From Obrimoposthia wandeli (Eukaryota), in the NCBI GenBank assembly GCA_977020255.1, contig CDROCS010002422.1, positions 124,001 through 188,000 on the forward strand: a stretch of 64,000 nt of DNA, read 5' to 3'. The position numbers were made by a program, and so were the translations under genes. A model generated the notes under the pieces. That model was given only the letters and a program-made list of their open reading frames with translations. It was not told the DNA's origin and made no database searches. Shown in pieces: positions 30,071-38,885 of this stretch; within the stretch, counting starts at the first letter, position 1; every line of letters starts with the position of its first letter.

Positions 30071-31561
30071 TTATGAAGGGAACGCGAACTGTGCACCTTC
30101 ACGAACACCCGCTGAAGGCCAGCGCTGGGTAATCGTTTTACGCTTTGTGTAAAAACGTACTGAATCAGGGCCATACGCAGCTAGATCACCAAACAATGAA
30201 CGCTTCCATCCACCAAAGCTGTGGTATGAAACAGGTACTGGTAACGGTACGTTAATGCCTACCATGCCTACCTTAATGTTATCACTGAAGTAACGTGCAG
30301 CTTCGCCATCACGGGTAAAGATACAAGTACCGTTACCGTATTCGTGGCTATCAATTAGCTCCATTGCTTCTTGCATTGTGTTAACACGTACCACAACCAA
30401 TACAGGGCCAAAGATTTCTTCTTTATAGCTAACCATTTCAGGGGTGACATTATCAATCAATGTACCACCAACGAAGTAGCCATTAGCATAACCTTCAACT
30501 TGTGGGTTACGACCGTCAACAATAATTTTAGCACCATCGTTTTCAGCGCCAGTGATGTAGCCATTCACTTTTTCTTTGTGTGCTTTAGTGATAACAGGAC
30601 CGAAATCGTTTGAACTATCGCTGAAAGCACCCACTTTTAGATCAGCCATGCCAGCCGTTATCTTCTCTATTAATAAATCAGCCGCTTGATCGCCTACTGC
30701 AACAACACAAGAAAGTGCCATGCAACGCTCGCCTGATGAACCAAAAGCTGCACCTATTAATGCTTGTGCTGCGTTATCCATATCAGCATCTGGCATGATG
30801 ATCGCGTGGTTCTTAGCGCCGCCTAGTGCTTGGCAACGCTTGCCGTGTGCACTCGCGGTTGTGTAAATGTATTCCGCAATTGGAGTTGAACCTACAAAAC
30901 TTACCGCCATTACATCTGGGTTTGTTAGTAGTGTATCTACTGCTACTTTATCGCCGTTAACTACGTTCATTACGCCCGCGGGTAAACCTGCGTCTAATAA
31001 AAGCTGTGCGATAAACATAGTAGATGAAGGATCACGCTCAGATGGCTTCAAGATGAAAGTGTTACCACAAACGATTGCCATTGGGTACATCCATAAAGGA
31101 ACCATCGCAGGGAAGTTAAAAGGTGTTATACCTGCAACTACGCCTAATGGCTGGAACTCACTCCATGAATCGATATTTGGACCCGTATTTTTACTGTGCT
31201 CGCCTTTTAGTAATTCTGGTGCGTAGCAAGCGTATTCAACGTTTTCTATACCACGTTGTAGCTCACCCATTGCATCGTGAGAAATTTTACCGTGTTCTTC
31301 ACCAATTAATTCGCAGATCTTGTCAGCATTTTCTTCTAGTAACTGCTTAAACTTAAACATTACTCGAGCACGCTTAGCAACAGGTGTATTGCGCCATGCA
31401 GGGAAAGCTGCTTGTGCTGCTGCAATCGCTTGCTCAACTGTTTCTTGACTAGCTAATGCAACTTGTTTGCTTACCTCACCAGTTGATGGGTTAAATACAT
31501 CTTGAGAACGGCCGCTGTCACTGACATCCAAACCGTTAATCATGTGTCCTAAAGTGTTCAT
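30071..31561 (-). CDS. mmsA: CoA-acylating (methyl)malonate-semialdehyde dehydrogenase (BauC/IolA-like)
   Basis: Motifs GITPFNFPAMVP, LKPSERDP, ALGGAKNH, FGSSGERCMA and EEIFGPV. Start ATG 31561 has a GAGG RBS. Confidence 0.95.
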   Translation of the reverse strand: MNTLGHMINGLDVSDSGRSQDVFNPSTGEVSKQVALASQETVEQAIAAAQAAFPAWRNTPVAKRARVMFKFKQLLEENADKICELIGEEHGKISHDAMGELQRGIENVEYACYAPELLKGEHSKNTGPNIDSWSEFQPLGVVAGITPFNFPAMVPLWMYPMAIVCGNTFILKPSERDPSSTMFIAQLLLDAGLPAGVMNVVNGDKVAVDTLLTNPDVMAVSFVGSTPIAEYIYTTASAHGKRCQALGGAKNHAIIMPDADMDNAAQALIGAAFGSSGERCMALSCVVAVGDQAADLLIEKITAGMADLKVGAFSDSSNDFGPVITKAHKEKVNGYITGAENDGAKIIVDGRNPQVEGYANGYFVGGTLIDNVTPEMVSYKEEIFGPVLVVVRVNTMQEAMELIDSHEYGNGTCIFTRDGEAARYFSDNIKVGMVGINVPLPVPVSYHSFGGWKRSLFGDLAAYGPDSVRFYTKRKTITQRWPSAGVREGAQFAFPS

Positions 31562-31857
31562 GTTAAACCTCATGTTTCTTTAAAGCTTATAATAGCTTCA
31601 TTAATTGGGTAAGCTTTGTAGCGTTCCTGTACAAGATAGCTATACAAGACCTACAAACAAGCTTATTAACTATACTACCGATGAGCACACCTTCAATCTC
31701 TGCGGTGAAAAGCGCTATCAATATCGGTAATTCATGTTCTTAAATGACTAGTTTTATAATAGTAAATACCAGCCAAGTATAAATTAACAGCTCAAAACAA
31801 CCAATAAATTCTAAATTTAAAAAATAGAACATTTGATTTATTTTGAGTTTGTTTAGT

Positions 31858-33201
31858 CTACTTTAACTCTCTTATAGACTCGCCTATAGCATTAATAACG
31901 TTATCTATCTCTTCACGCTCAACAATAAACGGCAAGCCTAATTGGATAGTATCACCGCCATAGCGCACGTAATAACCTTTTTCCCAACACTTCATCGCTA
32001 TTTCATAAGGTCTTCTTGCAGGCTCTCCTGGATACGATTCTATCTGTAACGCTCCAGCTAAGCCATAATTACGAATATCCGTAATATACTCTGTGCCTTT
32101 TAAGCTATGAAGCGCATTTTCAAAGATTGGGCTCATTTGCTTTACACGTGGCACAAGTTGCTCATTCTTCAGTATATCTAAAGAAGCTAACGCTGCTGCA
32201 CAGGCAACAGGGTGACCTGAATAAGTGTAGCCATGTGGTAATTCAATAGCGCCTTCAGGACCTGAGTTATCCATAAAGGTTTGGTAAATTTCAGAACTTG
32301 CTATCACCGCACCCATAGGTACAGCACCGTTAGTTAACTGCTTAGCAACATTCAATAAATCAGGGGTTACACCGAATTCTTCTGCGCCAGTGTTGGAACC
32401 CATACGGCCAAAACCGGTAATGACTTCATCAAAAATCAATAAAATGCTGTGTTGATCACAGATTTCACGTAAACGCTTTAGGTAGCCAACAGGTGGCGGT
32501 ATAACCCCTGCAGAACCCGCTAACGGCTCAATAATGACCGCTGCAATGTTTGACGCATCGTGCAGTGCGATAAGTTCAAGTAGCTCATCCGCTTTATCCG
32601 CGCCTGTTTCAGGCATACCGCGTGTAAAAGCATTTTCTTTAAGAAGAGTGTGCGGCAAGTGATCACAATCGACCCCCTGTCCGTACAAAGTACGGTTAGC
32701 ACCGATGCCACCTAAGCTAAACCCACCAAAGTTAACTCCGTGGTAACCTTTAGAGCGCCCTATTAGCTTGGTTTTAGTGGCCATACCTTTCTTGCGCCAA
32801 TACGCTCTGGCAATTTTTAGCGAAGTATCAGCCGCTTCCGAGCCTGAATCGGTGTAGAACACATAATCCAGTCCTTTTGGCATTAATTCCTTAATACGAT
32901 TAGCTAATTCAAATGCCTGTGGGTGCGCATATTGAAAAGCCGGTGCGTAATCTAACTGGCGTAATTGTTTAGAGACAGCATCCGCTATTTCAACTCTGCT
33001 GTGCCCTGCTCCACAAGTCCAAAGCCCTGACAAACCGTCAAAAACTTTACGGCCAGTTGAATCTGTCAAGTAACTGCCTTGACCTTCAACAATGATGCGC
33101 GGATCCGCTTTAAATTGACGGTTAGCCGTATATGGCATCCAGTAAGCTTCCATCTCTTGACGAGACATTCCAGCAGATTTTTGTAAATCGAATTCAGACA
33201 T
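31858..33201 (-). CDS. bauA: Beta-alanine:pyruvate (omega-amino acid) aminotransferase, class III PLP
   Basis: Motifs YWMPYTANRQFK, DGLSGLWTCGAGH, FDEVITGFGR, AKQLTNG and HGYTYSGHP. Start ATG 33201 has a GAGGA RBS. Confidence 0.9.
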   Translation of the reverse strand: MSEFDLQKSAGMSRQEMEAYWMPYTANRQFKADPRIIVEGQGSYLTDSTGRKVFDGLSGLWTCGAGHSRVEIADAVSKQLRQLDYAPAFQYAHPQAFELANRIKELMPKGLDYVFYTDSGSEAADTSLKIARAYWRKKGMATKTKLIGRSKGYHGVNFGGFSLGGIGANRTLYGQGVDCDHLPHTLLKENAFTRGMPETGADKADELLELIALHDASNIAAVIIEPLAGSAGVIPPPVGYLKRLREICDQHSILLIFDEVITGFGRMGSNTGAEEFGVTPDLLNVAKQLTNGAVPMGAVIASSEIYQTFMDNSGPEGAIELPHGYTYSGHPVACAAALASLDILKNEQLVPRVKQMSPIFENALHSLKGTEYITDIRNYGLAGALQIESYPGEPARRPYEIAMKCWEKGYYVRYGGDTIQLGLPFIVEREEIDNVINAIGESIRELK

Positions 33202-37366: not shown

Positions 37367-37442
37367 GTAGTGCTATTACGCTGAAAGGGCTCGCTCTTTC
37401 AGCAACTTTCTTGAAATTTAGTGAATCTAAAAGGAGATGACT

Positions 37443-38885
37443 ATGTCTATTGTCATTCGCGGCGGTACTGTTGTTACTGCTGAACAAACTTTCAGTGCTG
37501 ACGTTTACTGTGAAAACGGTAAAATAGTGGCTGTCGGTGAAAACTTAGAAGTACCGTCATCTGCAGAAGTTATAGATGCCACAGGCCAATACATTATGCC
37601 AGGTGGCATAGATCCACATACACATATGCAACTGCCTTTTATGGGCACCGTTGCCAGTGAAGATTTCTATACAGGTACGGCAGCAGGACTTGCCGGTGGT
37701 AATACTAGTATCATCGATTTTGTAATACCAGCACCTCAGCAACCATTAATGGAAGCTTACAATCAATGGCGCGAATGGTCTGAAAAATCAGCCGCTGACT
37801 ACGGTTTTCATGTAGCTGTTACATGGTGGGATGAATCTGTTAAAAGAGACATGGAAACCTTGGTTAAAGATCATGGTATTAACAGTTTTAAGCATTTTAT
37901 GGCTTACAAAAACGCGATTATGGCCGATGATGAAATTTTAGTTAACAGCTTTAAGCAATGTACTAAGCTTGGTGCTATGGCTACTGTACACGCTGAAAAC
38001 GGCGAGTTGGTTTTCCAGCTGCAAAAAGAAATTCTGGCTCAGGGGATCACAGGGCCTGAAGGACATCCATTATCAAGACCGCCTGTTGTTGAAGGTGAAG
38101 CGGCGAACAGAGCGATCCAAATCGCACAGGTAATGAATGTTCCTATTTATGTCGTTCACGTTTCATGCAAAGAATCGTTAGATGCCATCACGCGCGCCCG
38201 CAATGAAGGCCAACGCGTATTTGGTGAAGTATTAGCAGGACACTTAGTCATTGATGATAGCGTGTATCGCAACCCTGATTTTGAGTTTGCGGCAGCGCAC
38301 GTTATGAGCCCACCTTTTAGATCTAAAGAGCATCAAGCTGCACTTTGGAAAGGTTTACAAGGCGGTAATTTACAAACCACCGCAACCGATCACTGTTGTT
38401 TTTGTGCACCGCAAAAAGCGGCGGGCAAAGATAACTTTACCTTAATCCCTAATGGCACAGCGGGTGTTGAAGATCGCATGGCGATTATGTGGGATGCTGG
38501 GGTTAATACCGGCAAGCTGACGATGAATGAATTTGTTGCTGTCACTTCTAGCAATGCGGCAAAGATCTTTAATATGTATCCGCAAAAAGGCTCTATATCT
38601 GTGGGGGCTGATGCCGATATCGTGGTTTGGGATCCTGCGGGAACCCGTACTATTTCTGCCAAAACACATCACCAAAATATTGATTTTAATATTTTTGAAG
38701 GACGCACGGTTACAGGTGTACCAACGCACACATTAAGCCGTGGCAATTTAGTTTATAAAGAAGGTGATTTACGTGCAGTTAAAGGCGCGGGTAAATACAT
38801 TAAGCGCAAGCCTTTCTCTCCTGTGTTTGGCGCAATGGCTAAACAAGCGGATATCAACAAGCCAACTGCCGTCGATCGCAGTTAA
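37443..38885 (+). CDS. hydA: Dihydropyrimidinase / D-hydantoinase
   Basis: Motifs [18 protein letters not shown] (carbamylated Lys), VHAEN, VVHVS and TDHC. Start 37443 by RBS spacing (37437 is possible). Confidence 0.95.

Follow-up and report, generated by a model that had tools for sequence, protein, structure and literature searches.

A bacterial gene block for lower reductive pyrimidine catabolism and a linked F420 block encoding a candidate replacement for PreTA

The DNA analysed here is a stretch of 64,000 nucleotides (the window) on contig CDROCS010002422.1 (C2422), positions 124,001 to 188,000. It belongs to the composite Obrimoposthia wandeli assembly (GCA_977020255.1) of 1.35 Gb in 6912 contigs, which holds an animal and many bacteria, so that assembly-wide searches span many organisms. 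The window carries a block of genes for the lower steps of reductive pyrimidine catabolism (30071-39427) and a second block (5426-13547) that combines biosynthesis genes for cofactor F420 with the gene for a luciferase-like F420-dependent oxidoreductase of TIGR03842 (LLM; 11249-12253). The flavoenzyme PreT/PreA (PreTA), which performs the first step of the reductive route, has no counterpart in the window, and comparison with related genomes suggests that the LLM, with F420H2, quite probably takes its place.

Genes of the two blocks

The lower-pathway block contains the following genes.

30071-31573, minus strand: mmsA/bauC-type CoA-acylating malonate/methylmalonate-semialdehyde dehydrogenase (MMSDH); TIGR01722, 680 bits, cut-off 448
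31858-33264, minus strand: aptA/bauA-type beta-alanine:pyruvate transaminase (class-III aminotransferase); AptA model NF052567, 715 bits
33442-34383, plus strand: LysR regulator, divergent from aptA; Pfam HTH_1 and LysR_substrate
34922-35794, plus strand: nitrilase-superfamily (CN_hydrolase) candidate beta-ureidopropionase; CN_hydrolase, 215 bits
35894-37366, plus strand: NCS1 nucleobase:cation symporter; PF02133, 310 bits
37437-38885, plus strand: hydA/dht dihydropyrimidinase; TIGR02033, 612 bits, cut-off 393
38984-39427, plus strand: ydcZ-family DMT membrane protein; PF04657, 133 bits

The original prediction had described six of these genes (NCS1 importer, dihydropyrimidinase, ureidopropionase, beta-alanine aminotransferase, semialdehyde dehydrogenase and LysR) as a cluster, and the listing of open reading frames (ORFs) together with the Pfam and NCBIfam models confirms all six. 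Over its whole length, the dihydropyrimidinase can be aligned with the Pseudomonas aeruginosa enzyme 5E5C (783 bits), and its binuclear metal-site motif contexts (HxH, carbamylated Lys, His, His, Asp) are intact. The adjoining permease is 66-80% identical to the hydA-adjoining permease of relatives, both in clusters with the LLM (LLM-type) and in clusters with PreTA (PreTA-type). The transaminase matches the P. aeruginosa beta-alanine:pyruvate transaminase 4B98 (BauA) at 638 bits, its translation indicating that the true start is probably at 33201, and the dehydrogenase shares 79-82% identity with its positional counterpart in the clusters L018, L019 and L021. The ydcZ gene also lies 3' of hydA at loci L017, L018, L020, L021 and L022, all of which belong to the main LLM-type clade (L017 itself being unassigned as to type); among the fetched hydA loci, those of PreTA-type did not show it.

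The best solved relative of the CN hydrolase is the Drosophila beta-alanine synthase 2VHH (200 bits), followed by human beta-ureidopropionase (182 bits), while D-carbamoylases reach only about 90-97 bits. The protein retains the Glu-Lys-Cys motif contexts and shares 77-79% identity with the gene that opens CNhyd-NCS1-hydA-preT-preA operons, in whose fetched flanks no M20 gene was found. These features agree with its prediction as a beta-ureidopropionase. Assignment as an N-carbamoylputrescine amidase was rejected, the aguB model scoring 256 bits against a cut-off of 410. A D-carbamoylase of a D-hydantoinase system was likewise rejected, given the much lower D-carbamoylase scores, an operon context that favours ureidopropionase, and downstream genes that handle beta-alanine. 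Elsewhere in the window, a second, distant CN-hydrolase gene (15787-16560) adjoins an AsnC regulator (16845-17354), with no apparent link to the pathway.

The F420/LLM block lies to the left and contains the following genes.

5426-10335, plus strand: F420 biosynthesis genes cofG, cofH, cofD, cofC and cofE; Pfam/NCBIfam
10399-11118, plus strand: fno/npdG, NADPH-dependent F420 reductase; TIGR01915, 187.8 bits, cut-off 149.8
11249-12253, plus strand: LLM, candidate uracil/thymine reductase in place of PreTA; TIGR03842, 504.7 bits, cut-off 295.45
12318-13547, plus strand: M20 hydantoinase/carbamoylase-family amidase; NF006769, 684 bits; TIGR01879, 438 bits

CofG and CofH score 465 and 497 bits, and CofD, CofC and F420_ligase were also matched. 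The cofE gene (9556-10335) encodes a ligase-only protein of 259 amino acids, and no FbiB-type nitroreductase domain was found in the 47 window ORFs scanned with Pfam, each of at least 120 amino acids. The LLM matches TIGR03842 over its full length (residues 2-332 of 334), and its nearest solved relative is the F420-dependent Mer 1Z69. From its family, from Mer as nearest structure and from the adjoining cof and fno genes, its cofactor would be F420. The fetched clusters of L018, L019 and G053 show no carbamoylase candidate other than the M20 amidase, whose gene adjoins that of the LLM. The window holds two candidates for the ureidopropionase step, this enzyme and the CN hydrolase. The original prediction had not included this second candidate, nor the ydcZ gene, nor a RutR-like gene 7 kb 5' of the window.

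The original prediction had stated that no preT/preA-like ORF occurs in the 64 kb, and this holds: neither a DHO_dh nor a glutamate-synthase small-subunit domain is present in the scanned ORFs, and tblastn with two PreT and two PreA queries from two hydA loci (E<=1e-3) gave no match in the window. Across the 1.35 Gb assembly, the PreA model NF006183 stays under its cut-off (best 100 bits versus 335), and RutA (TIGR03612) has no match at E<=1e-20, so that both PreA and RutA are absent from the whole assembly. A PreT-like match on contig C2422, at about 244.6 kb, was rejected as GltD, which adjoins GltB. On two other contigs of the assembly, C165 and C3578, the PreA model gives brief, disconnected partial hits that look like exons of the host animal's dihydropyrimidine dehydrogenase gene. 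The Rut pathway was also rejected, as RutA is absent from the assembly and the LLM has no match to the RutA model.

In a composite of 6912 contigs, the genome of this bacterium may be incomplete, and preTA might lie in an unassembled part of it, in which case nothing would be missing. This explanation is very improbable given the sub-threshold PreA scores across the assembly and the absence of PreA from closed genomes of LLM-type relatives. All seven genomes with the LLM beside hydA (G001-G007) are without PreA, including the complete genomes of Amphritea sp. HPY (G001) and Vreelandella aquamarina (G003), and the same search found PreA at 650-710 bits in three control genomes. The original prediction had named co-induced preTA elsewhere in the genome as grounds for its refutation; PreA was found neither in the window nor in the composite assembly, nor in LLM-type relatives, closed genomes included.

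Cluster layout and predicted operators

A dihydropyrimidinase scan of reference genomes yielded 80 hydA loci with 10 kb flanks. The LLM gene lies within 10 kb of hydA in seven of them (Amphritea, a Colwellia metagenome-assembled genome (MAG), Vreelandella, Halomonas organivorans, Halioglobus and two further genomes), none of which has PreTA. In 60 of the 80 loci, preT-preA adjoins hydA, and none of these has the LLM. The remaining 13 have neither in the fetched flank and are mostly on short contigs; among the five of these checked genome-wide, three encode PreA elsewhere, one encodes the LLM, and one is a fragmentary MAG with neither.

In G053, G185, G025, G192, G554, L019 and L021, the whole set forms a single cluster of 17-20 kb with rutR-like, mmsA, aptA, lysR, sometimes CN hydrolase, NCS1, hydA, cofGHDCE, fno, LLM and M20 genes. 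G185 has CNhyd-NCS1-hydA-cofGHDCE-fno-LLM-M20 all on one strand. Some relatives' clusters add genes that are not in the window, namely a Tsx nucleoside channel, the PntAB transhydrogenase and RibA (GTP cyclohydrolase II, in Amphritea); these PntAB, Tsx-like and GTP cyclohydrolase II extras are located at 12464-15404 and 17031-17642 in L018, 12898-16625 in L021 and 11625-12353 in L019. Their presence would fit NADPH supply for PntAB, nucleoside uptake for Tsx and supply of an F420 precursor for RibA.

The original prediction had allowed that the two blocks might never be linked in related genomes; they are adjacent in nearly all of them. In the window, they are separated by the following stretch.

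13548-30070, 16.5 kb: intervening DNA, apparently unrelated; Pfam

This stretch encodes two chemoreceptors, AsnC, LysE, a GGDEF protein, a hydrolase, a sulfatase-like protein, UbiA and an SBP-GGDEF-EAL protein, and tblastn found no counterpart of its proteins within the relatives' clusters. MITE-like repeats lie at 14840-15521 and 24921-25072. The separation by about 16 kb of MITE-rich DNA that had been proposed is thus borne out in its length and repeats; the layout, however, is a rearrangement into three pieces rather than a simple insertion. The order is rutR-like, 12 kb of sugar-related genes, the cof-LLM-M20 block, the 16.5 kb stretch and the mmsA-to-ydcZ block, suggesting that an ancestrally compact cluster was broken here into rutR, a cof-LLM block and an mmsA-hydA block. 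The pathway blocks are likewise split in three genomes of a second family sample (G716, G765 and G787). The GC content is 0.39 in the intervening DNA versus 0.44 in both pathway blocks, a difference too weak to serve as evidence of a common origin of the two blocks. Short MITE-like repeat families (about 150 nt) also occur at 40888-41033, 42751-42819 and 62544-62612, and are thus found around as well as between the blocks.

Two predicted regulatory sites were identified in the window.

5336-5351: predicted RutR-type operator, 90 bp 5' of cofG; exact TTKACCNNNNGGTMAA
34505-34520: predicted RutR-type operator, 5' of the CNhyd-NCS1-hydA operon; exact TTKACCNNNNGGTMAA

The motif TTKACCNNNNGGTMAA has exactly two exact matches in the 64 kb, one at each operon front, where 0.01 would be expected, its two degenerate positions having been picked after the window's two sites were seen. 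A weaker second box lies near the cofG operator at 5303-5318. The E. coli RutR consensus is TTGACCAnnTGGTCAA, to which TTKACCNNNNGGTMAA is close. In relatives, the motif stands 5' of cofG in G025, G053, G185, G192, L018 and L019, and at the front of the hydA operon, 5' of its first gene, in G025, G185, G192, G115, L018, L021, L022 and L025. It is thus found at both fronts in most LLM-type relatives, against a chance expectation of 0.05-0.45 per locus. Since the same type of predicted operator fronts both, the cof block and CNhyd-NCS1-hydA would form one regulon.

The site at 34505-34520 lies directly 3' of a promoter-like TTGCTT-N-CATAAT, its hexamers read by eye. The leader that follows (34521-34921) is about 400 nt long; the corresponding leaders measure 280-350 nt at Halomonadaceae loci and only about 90 nt in G185 and G115. 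A riboswitch or structured leader was rejected, as Rfam gave no match to 34521-34921 and its fold is no better than that of shuffled sequences (z -1.1). Alignment of the regions upstream of the hydA operon across genera was discarded because they are too diverged for use.

A gene for a TetR regulator lies on contig C2422, 7 kb 5' of the window. Its product has a YcdC-like C-terminal domain (TetR_C_3, 160 bits) and falls under the equivalog cut-offs (187 versus 368 bits for TIGR03613; 180 versus 230 bits for NF011584), and it is thus RutR-like rather than proven RutR. Its orthologues within LLM-type clusters are 53-58% identical to it, and those within PreTA-type clusters about 40%. The best match of the LysR protein in Pseudomonas mandelii (56% identity, 363 bits; next 215) is encoded divergently beside a bauA-like gene, and by this predicted orthology the LysR is BauR-type. 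The two regulatory tiers of the original prediction, RutR-type for the upper pathway and BauR-type for the lower, are retained with a different border. Because a RutR-type operator is also predicted at 34505-34520, the RutR tier would cover cof-fno-LLM-M20 together with CNhyd-NCS1-hydA, and the BauR tier aptA-mmsA only.

Distribution of LLM and PreA

Genome-wide searches covered the sampled genomes of a first family sample (n=301), a second family sample (n=231) and a phylum-wide sample (n=351). In the first, hydA is present in 22 genomes; the LLM occurs in six, all within those 22, and PreA in 15, of which 14 are within the 22, with no genome encoding both. Of the two genomes that have hydA but neither enzyme, one was later found to carry PreA fragments beside hydA. 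In the second, 16 genomes encode the LLM, 75 encode PreA and none encodes both, and a high-scoring hydA is present in all 91. Pooled, the two family samples thus contain 22 LLM genomes, every one with hydA, and 90 PreA genomes without overlap. The phylum-wide sample contains four LLM genomes, three with clustered genes and no PreA and one (G349) with both enzymes. Across the three samples, hydA is present in all 24 LLM-positive genomes, and the mutual exclusion of LLM and PreA is very strong, not absolute. The family sample that includes G003 also revealed a second hydantoinase paralogue, which scores 520-566 bits on TIGR02033 in many genomes without PreA and LLM; owing to this lower-scoring paralogue, TIGR02033 matches alone over-count pyrimidine pathways.

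In a tree of 86 dihydropyrimidinases, the LLM label requires four changes in four places, at least three of which are forced by well-supported branches. This placement suggests that the association of LLM with hydA arose or was transferred several times. The reductive step could instead be performed by an unrecognised reductase encoded elsewhere, such as an old-yellow-enzyme-type or other flavin ene-reductase, with the F420/LLM genes being neighbours for other reasons or acting on a side substrate, for example a modified pyrimidine. The search covered PreA-like and RutA-like genes only, and the pathway blocks are physically split in the window as in the three genomes noted above, both of which leave room for such an enzyme. 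It is nonetheless distinctly improbable, as it would leave unexplained the common RutR-type operator and the exchange of preT-preA for the LLM set, with its place in the cluster unchanged, in at least 3-4 separate hydA lineages.

Several observations weigh against the LLM as the replacement for PreTA. The substrate assigned to it is drawn wholly from comparison among genomes, and the bacterium from which the window derives is embedded in the composite assembly described above, so that its genome there may be incomplete. The predicted operator of the hydA operon is unusually far (417 bp) from the CN-hydrolase start codon, and the promoter scan made no call there. In addition, the tree provides only 3-4 independent contrasts, all in the same direction; with so few, a sign test is unable to reach significance (p=0.25), and the case for the LLM is carried by synteny combined with complementarity rather than by a formal test. 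Finally, G349, the only exception found to the LLM-or-PreA rule, holds both a stand-alone rutR-like-LLM-fno-cofECDHG cassette (L113/L114, contig C33) and a full preT-preA-rutR-M20-hydA cluster (L117/L118, contig C48). As this genome has both, LLM and PreA are not strictly exclusive, and the LLM substrate could be related but different. G349 is a high-GC genome, and its LLM cassette adjoins genes for a branched-chain 2-oxoacid dehydrogenase and for FecCD iron uptake.

The cassette of G349, lying apart from the hydA cluster in a genome that also has PreTA, would fit a scavenging pathway without a reductive step of its own, in which imported dihydropyrimidines, hydantoins or N-carbamoyl-beta-amino acids feed hydA and the amidases and the F420/LLM genes are unrelated or loosely related. 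Such a pathway would also accord with the NCS1 permeases, a family that includes hydantoin carriers, and with the very different substrate of Mer, the nearest solved relative of the LLM. However, preTA-bearing operons carry orthologues (66-85% identity) of the hydA, NCS1, CN-hydrolase and RutR genes, and only PreTA and cof-fno-LLM are exchanged between the two cluster types. Together with the invariable presence of hydA in LLM-positive genomes and the single type of predicted operator in front of both operons, this makes scavenging unlikely.

Proposed pathway and its meaning

The lower pathway is textbook and ordinary. At the level of families, the gene identities fit the original prediction that these enzymes take dihydrouracil through ureidopropionate and beta-alanine to acetyl-CoA. 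The NCS1 permease would import the base, and the dihydropyrimidinase would open dihydrouracil or dihydrothymine. The nitrilase-type amidase, and possibly the M20 amidase at 12318 as well, would then release beta-alanine or beta-aminoisobutyrate, which the BauA-type transaminase would convert to the semialdehyde; from this, the CoA-acylating dehydrogenase would form acetyl-CoA or propionyl-CoA. Upstream of these steps, the cof genes would make F420 and Fno would recharge it from NADPH, so that the LLM could reduce uracil or thymine at the 5,6 double bond by hydride transfer from F420H2, replacing the Fe-S flavoenzyme PreTA. As the redox potential of F420 is near that of NADPH, an F420H2-driven reduction is energetically plausible. 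The RutR-like TetR repressor would bind its one operator type 5' of cofG and of the CNhyd-NCS1-hydA operon, and the BauR-type LysR would separately turn on aptA-mmsA in response to beta-alanine. That the block is the downstream half of an F420 system in which the usual dehydrogenase is missing, as originally predicted, is strongly supported by comparative genomics, from which we infer catalysis by the LLM.

Among the closest known systems is the Pyd pathway (as in the Pseudomonas dht locus), which has an orthologous dihydropyrimidinase, NCS1 permease, carbamoyl-amidase and RutR-like regulator, and whose CNhyd-NCS1-hydA-preT-preA clusters match the operon layout in the window. Its defining Fe-S flavoprotein dihydropyrimidine dehydrogenase (PreT/PreA or PydA), however, is absent here, and cofGHDCE-fno-LLM is found instead. 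The transaminase, the CoA-acylating semialdehyde dehydrogenase and the divergent LysR, orthologous to the one beside P. mandelii bauA, correspond to the bauR-bauA-bauC module of P. aeruginosa, which is embedded here in a pyrimidine cluster rather than standing alone. With the E. coli Rut pathway (RutA-G, RutR), the system has in common a repressor of the RutR family (TetR_C_3/YcdC domain) and an operator near the E. coli RutR consensus; RutA, which is also luciferase-like and is supplied by a separate reductase, is absent, and the enzymes further down the pathway belong to the reductive route. The LLM itself joins the F420-dependent luciferase-like enzymes (Mer, Fgd and Adf) as a full-length member of TIGR03842, the 'CPS_4043 family', that adjoins Fno and a full cof set. 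Known enzymes of this kind reduce a pterin-bound C1 unit or oxidise sugars or alcohols, not the pyrimidine ring, and we know of no substrate for TIGR03842.

In the library searched, no paper connects F420, deazaflavin, TIGR03842 or CPS_4043 with uracil, dihydropyrimidines or pyrimidine reduction. In Colwellia psychrerythraea 34H, the M20 and fno genes are reported to rise together under cerulenin (PMC4744452); this rise shows only that the operon is expressed.

The source is a cold-sea bacterium, a small part of whose DNA also turns up in sea-ice and seawater metagenomes; no RNA run was found to contain the window's DNA. Some Proteobacteria make F420 and, to our knowledge, almost nothing is known of its role there. 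It seems likely that the TIGR03842 LLM is a new, Fe-S-free and F420H2-driven dihydropyrimidine dehydrogenase that has taken over from PreTA on several occasions among marine and halophilic Gammaproteobacteria, which would give F420 its first defined catabolic job in Proteobacteria. More speculatively, the exchange may be an adaptation that spares iron, and G349 may have retained the two forms as alternative isoenzymes. If the assignment is true, an orphan family, TIGR03842, would gain a concrete substrate, and the first step of pyrimidine breakdown would have a second, unrelated solution. Pathway calls would also be corrected for genomes with hydA and without preTA, which are otherwise scored as unable to use uracil or thymine, and there would be a reason for these bacteria to keep a whole cofactor pathway for one enzyme.

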